Origin: Podarcis muralis
Taxonomy: Eukaryota
Assembly (NCBI RefSeq): GCF_964188315.1
Contig: NC_135657.1
Coordinates: 99,448,001-99,512,000 of the forward strand
DNA: 64,000 nucleotides
Direction of reading: 5' to 3'
Under the pieces are notes generated by a model. The model made no database searches. It saw only the letters and a list, made by a program, of their open reading frames with translations, and was not told where the DNA came from. Below, in pieces: positions 7,141-57,245 of this stretch; the first letter of the stretch is position 1; each line of letters starts with the position of its first letter. The position numbers were made by a program, and so were the translations under genes.

Positions 7141-7276
7141 CAGGCTTCCTCAAACTCAGCGCCCCAGGTGTTTTTGGCCTCCAACTCCCGTCATCCCTAG
7201 CTAGCAGGACCAGTGGTCAGGGATGATGGGAATTGTAGTCTGAAAACATCTGGAGGGCCAAGTTTGAGGAAGCCTG
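7141..7276. mobile_element. 136-bp hAT MITE
   Basis: TIR CAGGCTTCCTCAAACT / AGTTTGAGGAAGCCTG; TSD TTGTAGTG / TTGTAATG. Confidence 0.85.
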
Positions 7277-10432: not shown

Positions 10433-10632
10433 NNNNNNNNNNNNNNNNNNNNNNNNNNNNNNNNNNNNNNNNNNNNNNNNNNNNNNNNNNNNNNNNNNNN
10501 NNNNNNNNNNNNNNNNNNNNNNNNNNNNNNNNNNNNNNNNNNNNNNNNNNNNNNNNNNNNNNNNNNNNNNNNNNNNNNNNNNNNNNNNNNNNNNNNNNNN
10601 NNNNNNNNNNNNNNNNNNNNNNNNNNNNNNNN
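10433..10632. other. Assembly gap (exactly 200 N, probably a placeholder size)
   Basis: Run of 200 N seen directly. Confidence 0.99.
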
Positions 10633-33488: not shown

Positions 33489-33624
33489 CAGGCATAGGCA
33501 AACTTGGCTCTCCAGATGTTTTGGGACTACAATTCCCATCATCCCAGACCGCTGGTCCTGTTAGCTAGGGGTGATGGGAGTTGCAGTCCCAAAACATCTG
33601 GAGGGCCGAGTTTGCCTATGCCTG
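33489..33624. mobile_element. 136-bp hAT MITE
   Basis: TIR CAGGCATAGGCAAACT / AGTTTGCCTATGCCTG; TSD ATCTAGTC. Confidence 0.88.
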
Positions 33625-36784: not shown

Positions 36785-36821
36785 CTGGAAAGCAAGTACA
36801 CGTATTAAGCATATAACATAA

Positions 36822-37168
36822 AGGGTAAAGGTACCCCTGACCATTAGGTCCAGTCGTGGCCGACTCTGGGGTTGCGGCGCTCATCTCGCTTTATTGGCCG
36901 AGGGAACCGGCATACAGCTTCCGGGTCATGTGGCCAGCATGACTAAGCCGCTTCTGGCAAACCAGAGCAGCACACGGAAATGCCGTTTACCTTCCCGCTG
37001 GAGCGGTACCTATTTATCTACTTGCACTTTGACGTGCTTTCGAACTGCTAGGTAGGTAGGAGCAGGGACTGAGCAACAGGAGCTCACCCCATCGGGATTC
37101 GAACCACCGACCTTCTGATCGGCAAGTCCTAGGTTCTGTGGTTTAACCCACAGCACCACCCGCATCCC
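36822..37168 (-). mobile_element. Sauria SINE, second subfamily
   Basis: Reverse complement of the 14020-type copy; flanked by AGCATATAACATAA / AGCATATAATATAA. Confidence 0.92.
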
Positions 37169-37184
37169 ATAGCATATAATATAA

Positions 37185-37544
37185 GGTAAAGGTAAAGGTA
37201 CCCCTGCCCGTACGGGCCAGTCTTGACAGACTCTAGGGTTGTGCGCTCATCTCACTCTATAGGCCGGGAGCCAGCGCTGTCCGCAGACACTTCCGGGTCA
37301 CGTGGCCAGCGTGACAAGCTGCATCTGGCGAGCCAGCGCAGCACACGGAACGCCGTTTACCTTCCCGCTGGTAAGCGGTCCCTATTTATCTACTTGCACC
37401 CGGGGGTGCTTTCGAACTGCTAGGTTGGCAGGTGCTGGGACCGAACGACGGGAGCGCACCCCGCCGCGGGGATTCGAACCGCTGACCTTTCGATCGGCAA
37501 GTCCTAGGTGCTGAGGCTTTTACCCACAGCGCCACCCGCGTCCC
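37185..37544 (-). mobile_element. Sauria SINE, young subfamily, tandem with the previous copy
   Basis: Reverse complement of the 8386-type copy; TSD TAGCATATAATATAA (37170-37184 / 37545-37559). Confidence 0.93.
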
Positions 37545-38301
37545 TAGCATATAATATAAATGCATTCAAATGGCCATTGTATTTGAAAAACCTCTAAGAA
37601 AACTTCTGCAGAGCTGACTTTAGCCATGTCCTATTCTCTCCTCTGCCTCATTTGTTCGAAGCCTTTCAGATTGTTTACCTTTTAGATCTGGTTCATAAAT
37701 TTGGTTTCCTTAAAATACAAGGTTGCTTCCAGCTTTTTAATTGTTTTTCCACACTCCTCTGATAGTTGACACTTTTAGAAGCGCTCCCCCCCCCCCCGAC
37801 ACTGGCACGTGTTCAGGATTTTATTTTTCCCCCCACATCGGTGCTGAGGCAAACACAGCTTGTTTACTTGTTTGTGCACTAACTTAGGAGATAACATCAG
37901 CAGAAGCACGCAGAGTTTTGGAAATATGCTTAACAGGCTATCTTTAGGCCTTTGAGGACTGTATTGTCCTGTATAGGGCATGGTGGTTTTGCTTAAAGAA
38001 GAAGAAGAAAACATTCTGAATTGATTCTGTGTTTATTATGTTTGCATAACTATATTTATAATTATTTGTAAATACAAATGGACCTGCAATAAAATATGTG
38101 CAGTGAAGAGTGCAGCAGTTCAGCTAGCCATGCCTTATTTCAGTCGTTCCCCCCACCCCCGTTTTCTTTCTTCTTCCAACAACCAGTCAGTATGCTCAGT
38201 CCCCATTGGGCTGCTGGGATTCCCTTTTTCTTCTTCTTTTTGTGCTTCTGAAAAATATGCATGCCAATACTGTCTTCGTGTGTGTGGATGGTACTGTTTT
38301 A

Positions 38302-38663
38302 AGGTAAAGGTAAAGGTACCCCTGCCCGTACGGGCCAGTCTTGACAGACTCTAGGGTTGTGCGCCCATCTCACTCAAGAGGCCAGGGGCCAGCGCTGTCC
38401 GGAGACACTTCCAGGTCACGTGGCCAGCGTGACATCGCTGCTCTGGCGAGCCAGAGCCGCACACGGAAACGCCGTTTACCTTCCCGCTAGTAAGCGGTCC
38501 CTATTTACCTAGTTGCACCCGGGAGTGCTTTCGGACTGCTAGGTTGGCAAGCGCTGGGACCGAACGACAGGAGCTCACCCCACCGCGGGGATTCGAACCG
38601 CCGACCTTTCGATCGGCAAGCCCTAGGCGCTGAGGCTTTTACCCACAGCGCCACCCGCGTCCC
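38302..38663 (-). mobile_element. Sauria SINE, young subfamily
   Basis: Full length on -; TSD TG(G/C)TACTGTTTTA. Confidence 0.92.
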
Positions 38664-54000: not shown

Positions 54001-55694
54001 GACATTGGGATAGATTGGAAATGCTCAGGGCGACAACCACATGTGTGTGTGTGGCATGTATATAAGCACAGACATATACCTTCCAGAAAGTTTAAGTGAT
54101 AAGTCTTACAACAGTAAACAAAGATGGAAACCAAAACGCTAGAGAGGGGATCGTCTTAATGAAAACCATTTGTGTGCTAAATTGAAAGGAAAGCTACCGT
54201 CTTTGAAGCCATATGTTTGATTGGTTATTTGAAAATTCTTCTTTGCGATGGTATTCTGTGATTCCAAAGGCTAGAAAAATGTAACTTGGACTTGCTATTT
54301 ATTGGTTCTTGAAAGCACCCATTGACCTTAGAATTCGTTTTGGCAGTACGTGTATGCATTATGAAATTGTGGGTGTACCCAAAACGTAAGAACTGGGTCT
54401 TATACATACACTTTCTCTCTGCATAGTAGACATCACTGCTTAGTATGAAAAATTCCTGGGGACGCTTAAGTAGGGAATAATCCCCACTGGACAGAAGAGA
54501 TTTACTTCTGAAGTTGAACAAACATTCATCATCTTCACCAAAGGCCTTTCTCTGGCTACACTCTGTACCTTCAGAGGTCAAACAGGTGGTCTGTGGTTAG
54601 ACCCAGACTGTGGAATCCTCTCTGTCAGCAAGTTTGCTGTGTGTTTTGTCTGCCATCTTTGATGCACCAGTCAAAATCCATCCTATCATGGGTTTATTGT
54701 TGATTTTTGATTTTTGATTTATTTATTGTTATTTTACATTATTTTATCAGTTGTTTTAACTGCTGGCTCTGCAGTTTTGTTCATTTGTTTATTGTTCCAG
54801 GGTTTGTTTTTTTACTTTATTCAGTTATTTCATAAAATTTATCCGCCGCTTGAATATTAAAAACAAAAACCTCAAGACTGTGTACAAAAATATAAAAATA
54901 AAACGATAAAATCATCAATAAGGAGATTTAACAACAATTACTGGAGACTTTCGAGAACATTAGATGCAGAACAGGGTATGGTACAGTATCTGTGTGAAAA
55001 ATCATGACCTTTTAATCATTTCACAGCATTCCAAACATTTACAATATTTCTTTAAGGTTCTGCCTTTGGAACAAAACGTGTGTGAGAATTAGGCAGTTCT
55101 TAACAGGCAATATGCCAGACACAGCATATCACATTTCCGTATGTTGTGCCCACAATGGCTTCTCCAGTTTGCAAACATGCCCACGTGCCCACGAAGTTTA
55201 GCAGTTCCTGTTTTCAAGCATCCATTTCACTGTGGTTACACGAGCTCTTAATGGAATGCCTGGTAAGAAAATCCTGGGAGCTAGCTGAAGTCTGCTAACG
55301 TCTGAATATAGGATGAATTCCTTAGTTTGGATACTAATATGCCATAATCCATAATCATTTTCCTCATATCAAAGAGTAGCTTGGTATATGTTTCACTTTT
55401 TCCTGCTGCTGGAATGAACGCTGTGCTTTTTACAGCATTTGCTTTTTCTTAAATTACTCATATAACTGAACCTGTTTGCGTATTAGCTTTGTGCCAAAAA
55501 AATTTATCCTGCATTTTTTGACATTTCTCCATCAGTTAATGCGGGAGGGAGAACGTATTTGAAAATTAGCAACAGTGAGAGAAAAATGTCAGCGCAATTC
55601 TCCTGGGGGGGATGTAAGTTTTCTGTTGTGCCTGTGTTACTTTTGAGGTGCCTAAGGGATGTTTAAGGCACGTGGGTGGCGCTGTGGTCTAAAC

Positions 55695-56380
55695 CAGTGT
55701 TTCCCAACCTTTTTTGGGCAAAGGCACACTTGTTTGATGAAAAAAATCTTGAGGCACACCACCATTACAGCCCCGTGACGTCAGCGCGCAGCGTCACGCC
55801 GGGAGGGAAGGGCGCCGGGGCGCTGCTGCTGCTGCTGCCGCCGCCGCTCCCGGCAGGCATGGGCCCAGCTGAGGCGGCGGCGGCTGTTGTGGTGGTGGCG
55901 GCGATAGCGGGCGGAGGAGGGGGCGGCGGCGGGGCCGAGGTGGCCGGCGGCGGCGGGGGAGGCAGCGGCGGGTGGAGCAGGAGGGCAGCCGAGGCCGGTG
56001 AGGGAGTAGGGTTGCCCGGGGCTTGAGGAGCCGTCGCCGGGAGTTGCTGCTGCTGTTGTTGCTGCTGCTGCCCGGACATGCCGGCCTCCTCCTCGTCCGC
56101 TGTCTCGCGCTCCTCCCTTTTGCGCGCGCTGCCCCGCCGCCGCCCCATTGGCCGGGTCCTGTCAGCTGATCCTGTGTTATTTCCTGTGTGTGTGTGTGAG
56201 GGGAGAATGGAGAGAGAAACCTCGGCACCACCACCGCGGAGCCGCCCCCGGCTCGACACGGATCCTCGCCGCCGCCACCCCGCCTCTCGCCGCCCGACTC
56301 GCCCGCCTCCCTCCCACGGCACACCAGGCAACGCCTCGCGGCACACTAGTGTGCCGCGGAACACCGGTTGGGAAACACTG
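55695..56380. mobile_element. Non-autonomous hAT (Charlie-like) DNA transposon carrying a captured host gene fragment (Pack-type)
   Basis: Perfect 15-bp TIRs CAGTGTTTCCCAACC / GGTTGGGAAACACTG; 8-bp TSD GTCTAAAC (55687-55694, 56381-56388); subterminal GGCACAC motifs; the SINE it interrupts resumes exactly after the TSD. Confidence 0.93.
55765..56079 (-). pseudogene. RANBP9: Captured RANBP9 N-terminal fragment forming a 104-aa chimeric ORF
   Basis: MSGQQQQQQQQQL...ASAALLLHPPLPPPPPPATSAPPPPPPPP...SSSSSAPAPFPPG shares four ordered anchors with recalled human RANBP9 (MSGQ..QQQQQQQQL..AAAAALLLHPPPPPPPATAAPPPPPPPP..SSAAAPFPHG). It then runs into VTLRADVTGL* near the element end. Confidence 0.8.
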
Positions 56381-57245
56381 GTCTAAACCACAGAGCCTAG
56401 GGCTTGCCGATTGGAAGGTCGGCAGTTTGAATCCCCGCGACGGGGTGAGCGTCCGTTGCTCAGTCCCAGCTCCTGCCCACCTAGCAGTTCGAAAGCACGT
56501 CTAGTTCAAGTAGATAAATAGGTACTGCTCTGGCAGGAAGGTAAATGGTGTTTCCGTGCGCTGCTCTGGTTCGCCAGAAGTGGCTTGGTCATGCTGGCCA
56601 CATGACCTGGAAAAACTGTCTGCGGACAAATGCCAGCTCCCTTGGCCTATAAAGCGAGATGAGCGTACAACCCCAGAGTCGTTCACGACTGGACCTAACA
56701 GTCAGGGGTACCTTTACCTTTACCTTTAAGGGATGTTTAGGAGCATCCTTCTTCTCATTCTCCAAATCACCTCACCAGTGATCTGTACTCTGAGGCTTTC
56801 CCAGGTTCCTGGGCCTCAGTTAAAAGCCCATTATGAGGTAAACTTGTCTCATGGGCCTTTTTCAGATCAGGAAACATGTGGTGCCAAGGGAGGCTGCAGA
56901 GTACTAGAGAAATGTTCAGGGCGAGTGGCGGAGAGACACCACACACCATCCCCAGCCTCTTCAGAACAACTGAAATTCTAATAATACTGAACTTTAAAGA
57001 AAGTGAGGGACAGGACAGCACTGGTATTAAGAAAATGGCGGGCACATAGTACGTGCAACAAGTCAGAAAGCTGTTGAATTTTCAGTTCTCTAATAGACTT
57101 TATCAGCCATCGTCGTGGCTATGTCACTGGTTTATTTTTCCAAGTAAAATTGATTTCATTCAGCTCAGTTTCACCATTAAGAAGCATTGAGAGATTCCAC
57201 CTGGGCAGAGCTTAAGGTTCACTATGCGCAACGTAAAACAGAATA

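Follow-up and report, generated by a model that had tools for sequence, protein, structure and literature searches.

A 686-bp insertion upstream of ANGPT2 exon 2, within the 64,000-nucleotide stretch of Podarcis muralis DNA that was analysed (the window), raises the question of whether a vertebrate hAT transposon has taken up part of a host gene, RANBP9, and whether it did so at this site or arrived already loaded. An earlier note, made from the letters alone, had described the 686-bp element with its perfect terminal inverted repeats (TIRs) and target-site duplication (TSD), GGCACAC motifs and 22-bp palindrome, and each of these was re-read in the sequence. The transposon copy occupies 55695-56380 and is bounded by perfect 15-bp TIRs, CAGTGTTTCCCAACC at 55695-55709 on the plus strand and its exact reverse complement at 56366-56380, and by a perfect 8-bp TSD, GTCTAAAC, at 55687-55694 and 56381-56388. 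Allowing up to two mismatches, the TIR occurs just twice in the 64 kb, where 0.21 occurrences are expected by chance. GGCACAC lies at 55723-29, 55753-59, 56318-24 and 56340-46, with an inverted copy at 56349-55, and the palindrome CGCGGCACACTAGTGTGCCGCG at 56337-56358, near the right end. The transposon ends themselves, taken in the earlier note to be 65-75 bp each, were revised from contig depth and the RANBP9 alignment to about 100 bp on the left and 65-90 bp on the right. The 103-bp left end (55695-55797, plus strand), delimited by contig depth and by the stop of RANBP9 homology at 55797, contains the TIR, the first two GGCACAC motifs and a palindrome, TGACGTCA, at 55776-83, and the 65-bp right core end (56316-56380, plus strand) holds the remaining motifs, the 22-bp palindrome and the other TIR. 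The right core starts at about 56316, and the loose ends and joint seen in contigs at 56312-56317 mark the point where cargo-free relatives start matching.

TIRs of hAT elements are about 10-25 bp long, begin with CAG or TAG and resemble known hAT TIRs; here the TIR is perfect over 15 bp and agrees at 15 of 16 positions with that of Anolis hAT-N3_AC. The TSD has the 8-bp length of hAT elements and is perfect on both sides, and the target GTCTAAAC, whose second letter is T and seventh letter A (nTnnnnAn), fits NYYTARRN and differs by one letter from NTCTAGAN, the two patterns reported for lizard hAT families (Novick et al. 2010, PMC3014272). The non-autonomous Anolis carolinensis families hAT-N3_AC (TIR CAGTGGTTCCCAACCT) and hAT-HT3N_AC (TIR CAGTGRTTCCCAAA) are a few hundred bp long and present in 10^2-10^3 copies (Novick et al. 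2010, PMC3014272). The lizard element studied here resembles both in its TIR (CAGTGTTTCCCAACCT) and in its 8-bp TSD of the NYYTARRN/NTCTAGAN type, but differs in that no host-gene cargo is described for either of them (PMC3014272). No Pfam match was obtained from the nine longest open reading frames (ORFs) of the window or from the element's own ORF, and neither a transposase nor a further Pack-type element turned up in the 64-kb window.

The insertion interrupts a tRNA-derived SINE (55674-56745, plus strand), which alignment to a SINE copy at ~14.0 kb shows to be split into 55674-55694 and 56381-56745. Deleting 55695-56388 (a 694-bp insert) joins GGGTGGCGCTGTGGTCTAAAC|CACAGAGCCTAGGGCTTGCCGA and restores a SINE whose sequence is colinear with that of eight further window copies; the insertion into a SINE is real. 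No tRNA was called by ARAGORN at the SINE head. The other CpG-rich islands in the window are SINE copies. Exons of ANGPT2 were found on the minus strand, in keeping with the ANGPT2 part of the locus named in the earlier note; the element lies upstream of exon 2 with its cargo in the ANGPT2 sense. A motif search of the window did not find exon 1, and a position in intron 1 is likely.

The interior of the element is GC- and CpG-rich within AT-rich flanks, as had been noted (GC 0.70-0.84 vs ~0.39), and the observed/expected CpG ratio is 0.85 in the cargo vs 0.26-0.31 in the flanks. By blastn, 55797-56097 aligned to RANBP9 exon 1 and leader of two squamate orthologues, L001 (73% identity, 188 bits, E 2e-51) and that of Gekko kuhli, L003 (78% identity, 187 bits, E 5e-50). 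The route to RANBP9 ran through P0003/L001, obtained from a search of 5.8 billion clusters, and P0003 in turn matched human RANBP9 in PDB 7nsc_A (E 1e-41), where the human residues given in the earlier note are those printed in the alignment. The captured coding fragment (55798-56079, minus strand, defined by blastn to L001 and L003) starts with the ATG at 56079-56077 and takes in exon 1 as far as codon 94. Homology ends inside the exon, at about codon 94 of ~150, and the splice donor, which in L001 follows the native exon end as HYKG|gtgagg, is absent from the cargo. The stop does not coincide with an exon border, so the cargo represents exon 1 over its first two thirds and not as a whole. 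The claim of a captured "RANBP9 exon 1 and leader" therefore stands for the start of exon 1, but the coding part ends at about codon 94 and the leader is proven for 18 nt only. The 94 RANBP9 codons run on into 10 codons from the left transposon end, giving a chimeric ORF of 104 codons plus stop (55765-56079, minus strand) that reads MSGQQQQQQQQQLPAT...APAPFPPGVTLRADVTGL* from 56079 to 55768. The RANBP9-like reading on the minus strand given previously was right, although one run had been misread and is actually GSGGGSSSSS. This 104-aa ORF has no Pfam domain; it ends before the LNEQEKEL...SPRY region, and the SPRY, LisH, CTLH and CRA domains are absent.

The RANBP9 5' regions of two other squamates (2.2 kb and 14 kb) contained neither the TIR nor GGCACAC; this parental comparison is cross-species, at 73-78% identity. 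A processed pseudogene or retrocopy, which would likewise place an incomplete copy of a host gene at a new site, was rejected: poly(A) and an L1-type TSD are both absent, whereas sequence preceding the ATG is present, the homology ends in mid-exon and the borders are TIRs. We also rejected L002 (P0001) as a second copy, as it shares only 175 nt (92%) before continuing into unique DNA and a CpG island other than this one; it may represent a further mosaic or a chimeric assembly.

Upstream of the ATG, 56080-56262 (minus strand) is co-amplified with the coding part at similar contig depth. Its first 18 nt (56080-56097) are identical, 18/18, to the Gekko RANBP9 leader, and its promoter-like motifs are a CCAAT box (-72) and two GC boxes (-66 and -168). 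This segment is probably RANBP9 5'UTR and proximal promoter, with homology proven only for 56080-56097 and with 56098-56262 assigned to RANBP9 only by contiguity, equal depth and these motifs. Beyond it, a GC-rich block (56263-56315) is common to a ~4-5-fold larger subfamily with different sequence to the left. For the 183-240 bp that precede the ATG, a RANBP9 origin is only partly shown, and an alternative arrangement that we rate as falling a little short of an even chance is that the interior combines two or more captures, with RANBP9 supplying 55798-~56262 and an older, unrelated promoter island supplying 56263-56315 and possibly more upstream. The break in depth speaks for such a composite: summed contig depth rises 4-5-fold at ~56263, from 1.8e4 at 56258 to 8e4 at 56275, one loose end falls at 56263 in individual X6, and 19 X6 contigs have different GC-rich sequence left of that position. 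Against it, the 23-mer at 56289-56311 is identical to sequence that in L001 lies 300 bp before the RANBP9 ATG, though inverted relative to the ORF, a match that hints at an origin of the GC-rich block, too, in the RANBP9 region. Under such an arrangement, much of the "leader" would be something other than RANBP9. A composite interior is compatible with the explanation that we favor and would refine it.

That explanation, which we hold to be very likely, is that the element is a copy of a non-autonomous, Charlie-like hAT family of a lacertid whose interior was replaced by host DNA from the start of RANBP9, captured ancestrally and then amplified. On this view the host DNA is made up of 94 exon-1 codons and of upstream sequence, of which at least 18 nt are leader and probably ~180 bp are leader with core promoter. 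In individual X1 the ends had a summed contig depth of ~1-3e5 (left end 1.3-2.9e5), the cargo ~1-2e4 and unique flank 12.4, and X6 showed a similar pattern; summed contig depth is not copy number, and the two individuals differ 2-5-fold, but in both the cargo stands at ~10^2-10^3 times the unique flank. Read in this way, the depth suggests that there appear to be hundreds or more cargo-bearing copies and roughly 10^4 copies of the bare ends. Predicted proteins point the same way: at least eight UniRef clusters of P. muralis proteins contain pieces of RANBP9 exon 1 (the listed members sum to ~19 sequences), some of them fused to the TIR-encoded "WETL" or the block-encoded "GGERRGGGGEDP", and the P. 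muralis paralogues run on into ...FPHGGDPALNEQEKEL... A search with P0003 for P. muralis RANBP9 returned only short fragments. At least seven sites of the element carry another letter in the contigs, in nearly all of the depth at six and in about half or more at 55736, and 5 of these 7 listed sites are CpG transitions; this pattern, with the CpG ratio of the cargo, shows that the copy is young.

The multi-copy depth of both ends and cargo corrects the earlier picture in that the capture is not private to this locus, this copy being one of many, and capture in an ancestral element rather than here is supported. It also bears on the improbable alternative that this is a single-copy, transposition-independent Pack-TIR, in which host DNA was copied between the halves of a hAT relic already resident here through template switching in replication (FoSTeS/MMBIR). 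Precedent favors that route, since 98.6% of animal Pack-TIRs are single-copy and a FoSTeS/MMBIR-type mechanism was argued to be the main one (Tan et al. 2021, PMC8277862). The depth of the cargo in two individuals is at odds with it, however, as are the perfect TIRs and perfect TSD inside a SINE, which are expected of a recent insertion of the whole element.

Still less probable is an assembly artefact, in which repeat copies were collapsed or wrongly joined and an element was set where the chromosome has none. In two individuals the short-read contigs end where the repeat begins, at 55692 and 55695, and among the listed records no contig or read spans either junction completely, contigs breaking at repeat borders. 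Nevertheless, a chimeric join would not create a perfect 8-bp TSD exactly around perfect TIRs with SINE halves that fit, and the contigs of independent individuals do reach the left junction, which supports the junction reported earlier over a misassembly. Words centred on the junction also occur in several runs, candidate source samples among them: three were sampled from a 63-nt query, two of which occurred in many runs, including some with other species labels, and the third in three runs. "Skip" joints at ~55694-56400 were considered as an empty allele and rejected, having only 21-27 nt on the short side; the best reading of them is as further copies of the SINE.

At the protein level, the 104-aa ORF gave only a chance match in PDB (E 2.3), two phmmer matches among 1.84 billion representatives, neither of them RANBP9, and two matches among 5.8 billion clusters with no direct match to RANBP9, because the ORF is of low complexity and is removed by the HMMER bias filter, and because of a length filter. 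Although these results and a BLASTP match to P0003 of just E 0.006 after composition adjustment could be taken to mean that the RANBP9 likeness is poly-Q, poly-P or GC-rich matching, and that the interior is family-specific GC-rich filler or the CpG island of another gene, that idea retains almost no credibility and is refuted for 55797-56097 (it could apply only to 56098-56315), where the DNA alignment is colinear over ~300 nt including the non-repetitive ATG context, PSPASAALLLHPP, SAGPM.AGSG and SSAPAPFP, where 188 bits stand far above the scores of 200 dinucleotide shuffles (25.5 +/- 3, highest 36.5), where the dust filter leaves the top match unchanged, and where the second orthologue, the identical 18-nt leader and the extended P. 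muralis paralogues agree, so that the identity proposed for the cargo is borne out by a significant match outside low-complexity sequence.

Under the favored history of ancestral capture and amplification, template switching would have brought the RANBP9 fragment into an ancestral element in a single event, either during repair of an excision double-strand gap or during replication. The loaded element would then have been mobilized in trans by a hAT transposase recognizing the TIRs together with the subterminal GGCACAC motifs. It could in this way have reached hundreds of sites or more, and internal deletion may have given rise to sister subfamilies in which other portions of exon 1 are kept. 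The copy studied here most likely has no protein function, judging from its sequence, because the ORF encodes the disordered Gln/Pro-rich N-terminus alone, without SPRY, LisH, CTLH or CRA; at most, it may add a CpG-island-like, promoter-like block in the ANGPT2 sense. As an intronic or upstream insertion near ANGPT2 without evident coding function, this copy by itself carries a modest practical message.

The element is a Pack-type hAT. Pack-hAT elements are known in animals, with 208 cases (Tan et al. 2021, Nat Commun 12:4280, PMC8277862), and ours resembles them as a non-autonomous hAT with intact TIRs and TSD around a host-gene fragment. The frog hAT-N8_XT, which carries 291 bp of CAPSL 5'UTR (PMC8277862), is similar in that its cargo is the 5' end of a gene. 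Among 100 animal genomes, only four Pack-TIRs were multicopy (with 3 copies in the example given), and transposition-independence was concluded for most (PMC8277862), unlike the RANBP9-loaded element, which appears to have reached hundreds of copies or more and to have diversified into subfamilies; we found no mention of lizard, Anolis or reptile in that survey. In Anolis, capture of extraneous DNA, mostly of other transposable elements, is reported only for hobo-like elements and Helitrons (PMC3014272). An amplified RANBP9-bearing hAT family is unusual for vertebrate gene-fragment capture. It shares with plant Pack-MULEs, Pack-CACTA and other Pack-type elements capture followed by amplification, chimeric ORFs and mosaic captures. 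It differs from Pack-MULEs, which are Mutator elements of plants with a 9-11-bp TSD and long TIRs, in being a hAT with an 8-bp TSD and a 15-bp TIR in a vertebrate host. Rice Pack-MULEs favor the GC-rich 5' ends of genes.

A broader proposal, which we regard as speculative and rather unlikely, is that hAT elements of the wall lizard form a mobile system for dispersing CpG islands and promoters, in which one hAT family would repeatedly have captured GC-rich promoter and first-exon segments, that of RANBP9 among them, and amplified them to hundreds to thousands of sites. If so, a fraction of copies would keep promoter activity, or would splice into host genes in subfamilies that retain the splice donor, and new transcription start sites and chimeric transcripts would arise genome-wide, as a vertebrate counterpart of the rice Pack-MULEs. 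Capture by DNA transposons has been well studied in plants, whereas the animal survey found almost only single-copy, mostly transposition-independent cases; a young vertebrate hAT family with host promoter and first-exon cargo offers a natural system for how hAT elements acquire host DNA through junction microhomologies, mosaics and inversions. The same family bears on why CpG-island 5' ends are favored and on how dispersed CpG-rich blocks affect methylation, transcription start sites and annotation. The effect on annotation is already visible, in that the P. muralis clusters described above, labelled as "uncharacterised" or "RANBP10" fragments, are pieces of RANBP9-bearing hAT elements.

The element at 55695-56380 is a non-autonomous hAT-type insertion whose interior is host DNA. 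Read from the window sequence, its terminal inverted repeats (TIRs) are CAGTGTTTCCCAACC at 55695-55709 and, exactly reverse-complemented, the same sequence at 56366-56380; no further match occurs in the 64 kb when up to 2 mismatches are allowed (chance expectation 0.21). An 8-bp target-site duplication (TSD), GTCTAAAC, lies on either side (55687-94 and 56381-88). GGCACAC motifs occur at 55723-29, 55753-59, 56318-24 and 56340-46, with an inverted copy at 56349-55; a 22-bp palindrome (56337-58) falls within the element's right end; and the interior has a GC content of 70-84% and a CpG o/e of 0.85, against 39% and 0.26-0.31 in the flanks. The TIRs, TSD, palindrome, GGCACAC motifs and GC/CpG-rich interior are all present as the earlier note had described them. 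Both flanks are parts of one tRNA-derived SINE, and in-silico removal of 55695-56388 yields GGGTGGCGCTGTGGTCTAAAC/CACAGAGCCTAGGG..., colinear with eight other copies of the same SINE in the window. Because the empty site is colinear with these copies, we conclude that the insertion, with its 8-bp duplication, is genuine and no chance pairing of repeats. The TSD fits the hAT target pattern nTnnnnAn/NYYTARRN, and the TIR differs by one base from that of Anolis hAT-N3_AC (PMC3014272). The nine SINE copies in the window (8411, 9258, 14043, 18028, 22346, 36821-37145, 37183-37519, 38298-38638 and 56381) share 78-86% mutual identity and explain every other CpG-rich island in it. Within the SINE head, the hAT target GTCTAAAC occupies a palindromic, stem-like site (CTGTGGTCTAAACCACAG), and hAT elements may insert there repeatedly.

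The minus-strand ORF inside the element (56079->55768, 104 aa) is of too low complexity for direct protein searches to be informative: it gave only a chance-level match against PDB, and RANBP9 was not among its two matches in 1.84 billion representatives. A word-indexed protein search with the ORF led to P0003, a 153-aa ORF from another squamate (Logan contig L001, 2.2 kb). P0003 matches human Ran-binding protein 9 (PDB 7nsc_A, residues 62-193, E 1e-41), and the printed P0003/7nsc_A alignment contains the human RANBP9 string given in the earlier note, AAAAALLLHPPPPPP...PATAAPPPPPP...SSAAAPFPHGDSALNEQEKEL. At the DNA level, 55797-56087 aligns with L001 1818-1537 at 73% identity over 309 columns (188 bits, E 2e-51), compared with 25.5 +/- 3.0 bits (maximum 36.5) when that segment was shuffled 200 times with its dinucleotides preserved, and the top L001 match is the same with the low-complexity filter on. 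The annotated Gekko kuhli RANBP9 locus (L003) aligns with 56097-55797 in two blocks of 78% and 90% identity (E 5e-50), and the 18-nt leader just upstream of the ATG, GACGAGGAGGAGGCCGGC, is identical in the element and in Gekko kuhli. Neither the TIR (up to 2 mismatches) nor GGCACAC was found in L001 or L003, in line with the earlier expectation of a RANBP9 locus free of TIRs, here for the orthologues of two other squamates. Since both alignments lie far above the shuffles and the orthologous loci carry neither TIR nor GGCACAC, sequence comparison establishes the RANBP9 ancestry of 55797-56097, and the proposed capture of RANBP9 is supported.

Both alignments end at window position 55797. The RANBP9 frame of L001 runs on via ...FPHCGDPALNEQEKELKRRL...NNLRVHYK to aaag/gtgagg, and the protein sequences P0003, P0004 and P0006 part ways after HYKG, from which we place the length of RANBP9 exon 1 at ~150 codons. 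The cargo holds the first 94 of these, with its breakpoint within the exon and no splice donor, and the final 10 ORF codons (VTLRADVTGL, then stop) come from the transposon's left end; the earlier description of the cargo as RANBP9 exon 1 holds for the start of the exon and not for its whole length. Numbered from the ATG, the upstream part of the cargo has a CCAAT box (-72) and three GC boxes (-66, -168 and -216), a set as expected for a putative TATA-less CpG-island promoter.

Copy number was gauged from Logan contigs of two individuals (DNA runs X1 and X6) placed on 55100-56900, with word depth summed. For X1 and X6, respectively, summed depth was 12.4 and 38.4 over the unique left flank, 1.3-2.9e5 and about 1e6 over the element ends, and 1-2e4 at specific positions (2.7e3-2.4e4 by bin) and 0.6-3e5 over the cargo; the SINE reached 1-4e6 in X1. 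As an order of magnitude, summed depth not being equal to copy number, the ratios to the unique flank suggest about 10^4 copies of the ends and 10^2-10^3 or more of the RANBP9 cargo. The left transposon boundary by depth (~55797) is the same as the alignment end. On the right, depth steps up at ~56263 (from 1.8e4 at 56258 to 8e4 at 56275), with 19 X6 contigs carrying another GC-rich sequence left of 56263, and rises again from ~56316, where the match to cargo-free relatives starts (loose ends 56312 and 56317; joint 55717->56317). A 23-mer at 56289-56311, GCCGCCCGACTCGCCCGCCTCCC, falls in a block common to a larger subfamily and is identical to L001 1219-1241, which lies ~300 bp before the RANBP9 ATG, but it runs inverted with respect to the ORF; no counterpart is conserved in the Gekko RANBP9 locus. 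The right GC-rich block may also derive from the RANBP9 upstream region, inverted at capture, as the 23-mer identity hints, or it may be an older, unrelated capture, in which case the cargo comprises two host pieces.

Independently of depth, the predicted proteins of Podarcis muralis also point to many copies: at least 8 UniRef clusters (P0007, P0008, P0010, P0012, P0024, P0045, P0139 and P0143; ~19 sequences) of 'uncharacterised' proteins, one of them named RANBP10, are RANBP9 exon 1 pieces such as ...SAGPMPAGSGGGSSAPAPFPHGGDPALNEQEKEL...HYKG; Pack-hAT copies contaminate the gene annotation of this species. Some fragments begin with GGERRGGGGEDP, the translation of window 56292-56257, some finish in G-WETL, an in-frame translation of the TIR, and others are joined to a common tail, RGTEGGRGRGHRHPQ... 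These fragments show that sister subfamilies retain the 3' portion of exon 1, some also sequence beyond it, and the simplest history would be a longer ancestral capture followed by differing internal deletions. At the HYKG/WETL junction, DNA may have been joined directly at an AAAGGT microhomology, or gene prediction may have spliced the exon 1 donor to the TIR. Another Logan contig, L002 (1-1751, ERR14042001), has the RANBP9 leader and first 49 codons at 92% identity to the cargo, running straight into another CpG-island-like 5' gene end (ATGGCGGCG..., GTGAGT donor) and then unique AT-rich DNA; the TIR is absent from 1-1751, and L002 represents either an assembly chimera or one more copy that is mosaic or truncated.

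Animal Pack-TIRs are mostly Pack-hAT (208 of 370 cases in 100 genomes), with only four multicopy, of which the example has three copies, and their authors favor a transposition-independent origin (PMC8277862). Whereas nearly all of those are single-copy, the lizard element appears strongly amplified; the Anolis DNA-transposon survey describes hAT families with near-identical TIRs but without host-gene cargo (PMC3014272), and it is the RANBP9 cargo that sets the lizard element apart from them. The literature searched yielded no account of amplified Pack-hAT elements from lizards. Pack-hAT elements are thus known in animals, and what is new here is the apparent strong amplification, the element at 55695-56380 being an ordinary member of its amplified family. 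Host DNA would have been acquired through a template switch in gap repair or in replication, and the loaded element then mobilised in trans by a hAT transposase and amplified; no hAT transposase was seen among the nine longest window ORFs tested and the element's own ORF, none of which has a Pfam match.

At least 7 element sites, among those listed 55736, 55750, 55964, 55987, 56258, 56277 and 56334, show another letter in nearly all depth, or, at 55736, in roughly half of it or more, a rate of ~1% of the element that is a lower bound. CpG->TpG/CpA changes, which mark germline methylation subsequent to insertion, account for five of these seven sites. Since CpG o/e is still 0.85, this copy is young, with a probable age of a few million years.

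The cargo is covered by RNA contigs and reads. Over the coding part, first mates of the stranded RNA run X23 lie mainly on the + strand (25-48 vs 2-10), which under the usual dUTP design is ORF sense here. X23 reads carry G at 55992 in 26/32, a base absent from the X1 and X6 DNA contigs and from the contigs of RNA run X15. One X15 contig, of 1508 nt, follows 56104->55965 with 2 differences before it diverges. Most likely, the RNA signals come from native RANBP9 mRNA rather than from this copy, and the G at 55992 is likely an allele or population difference between that mRNA and the transposon family.

The ANGPT2 part of the earlier placement was also correct: a fibrinogen-domain gene has minus-strand exons at ~46.19-45.96, 42.74-42.62, 39.8-39.5, 36.7, 32.4, 31.7, 28.2 and 24.7 kb, the last of which (24812-24657) matches Angiopoietin-2 in PDB at E 7e-32 vs 1.5e-22 for Angiopoietin-1. 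Because a motif search did not find ANGPT2 exon 1 within the 64-kb window, the element, upstream of exon 2 and with its RANBP9 ORF in ANGPT2 sense, is placed in intron 1 or the 5' flank. Elsewhere in the window, an assembly gap of 200 N (10433-10632) is flanked on both strands by long GC-rich ORFs without a Pfam match, and a pair of hAT-like MITEs from other families, each 136 bp long (7141-7276 and 33489-33624), have 16-bp TIRs (CAGGCTTCCTC... and CAGGCATAGGC...) and 8-bp TSDs, TTGTAGTG/TTGTAATG and a perfect ATCTAGTC.
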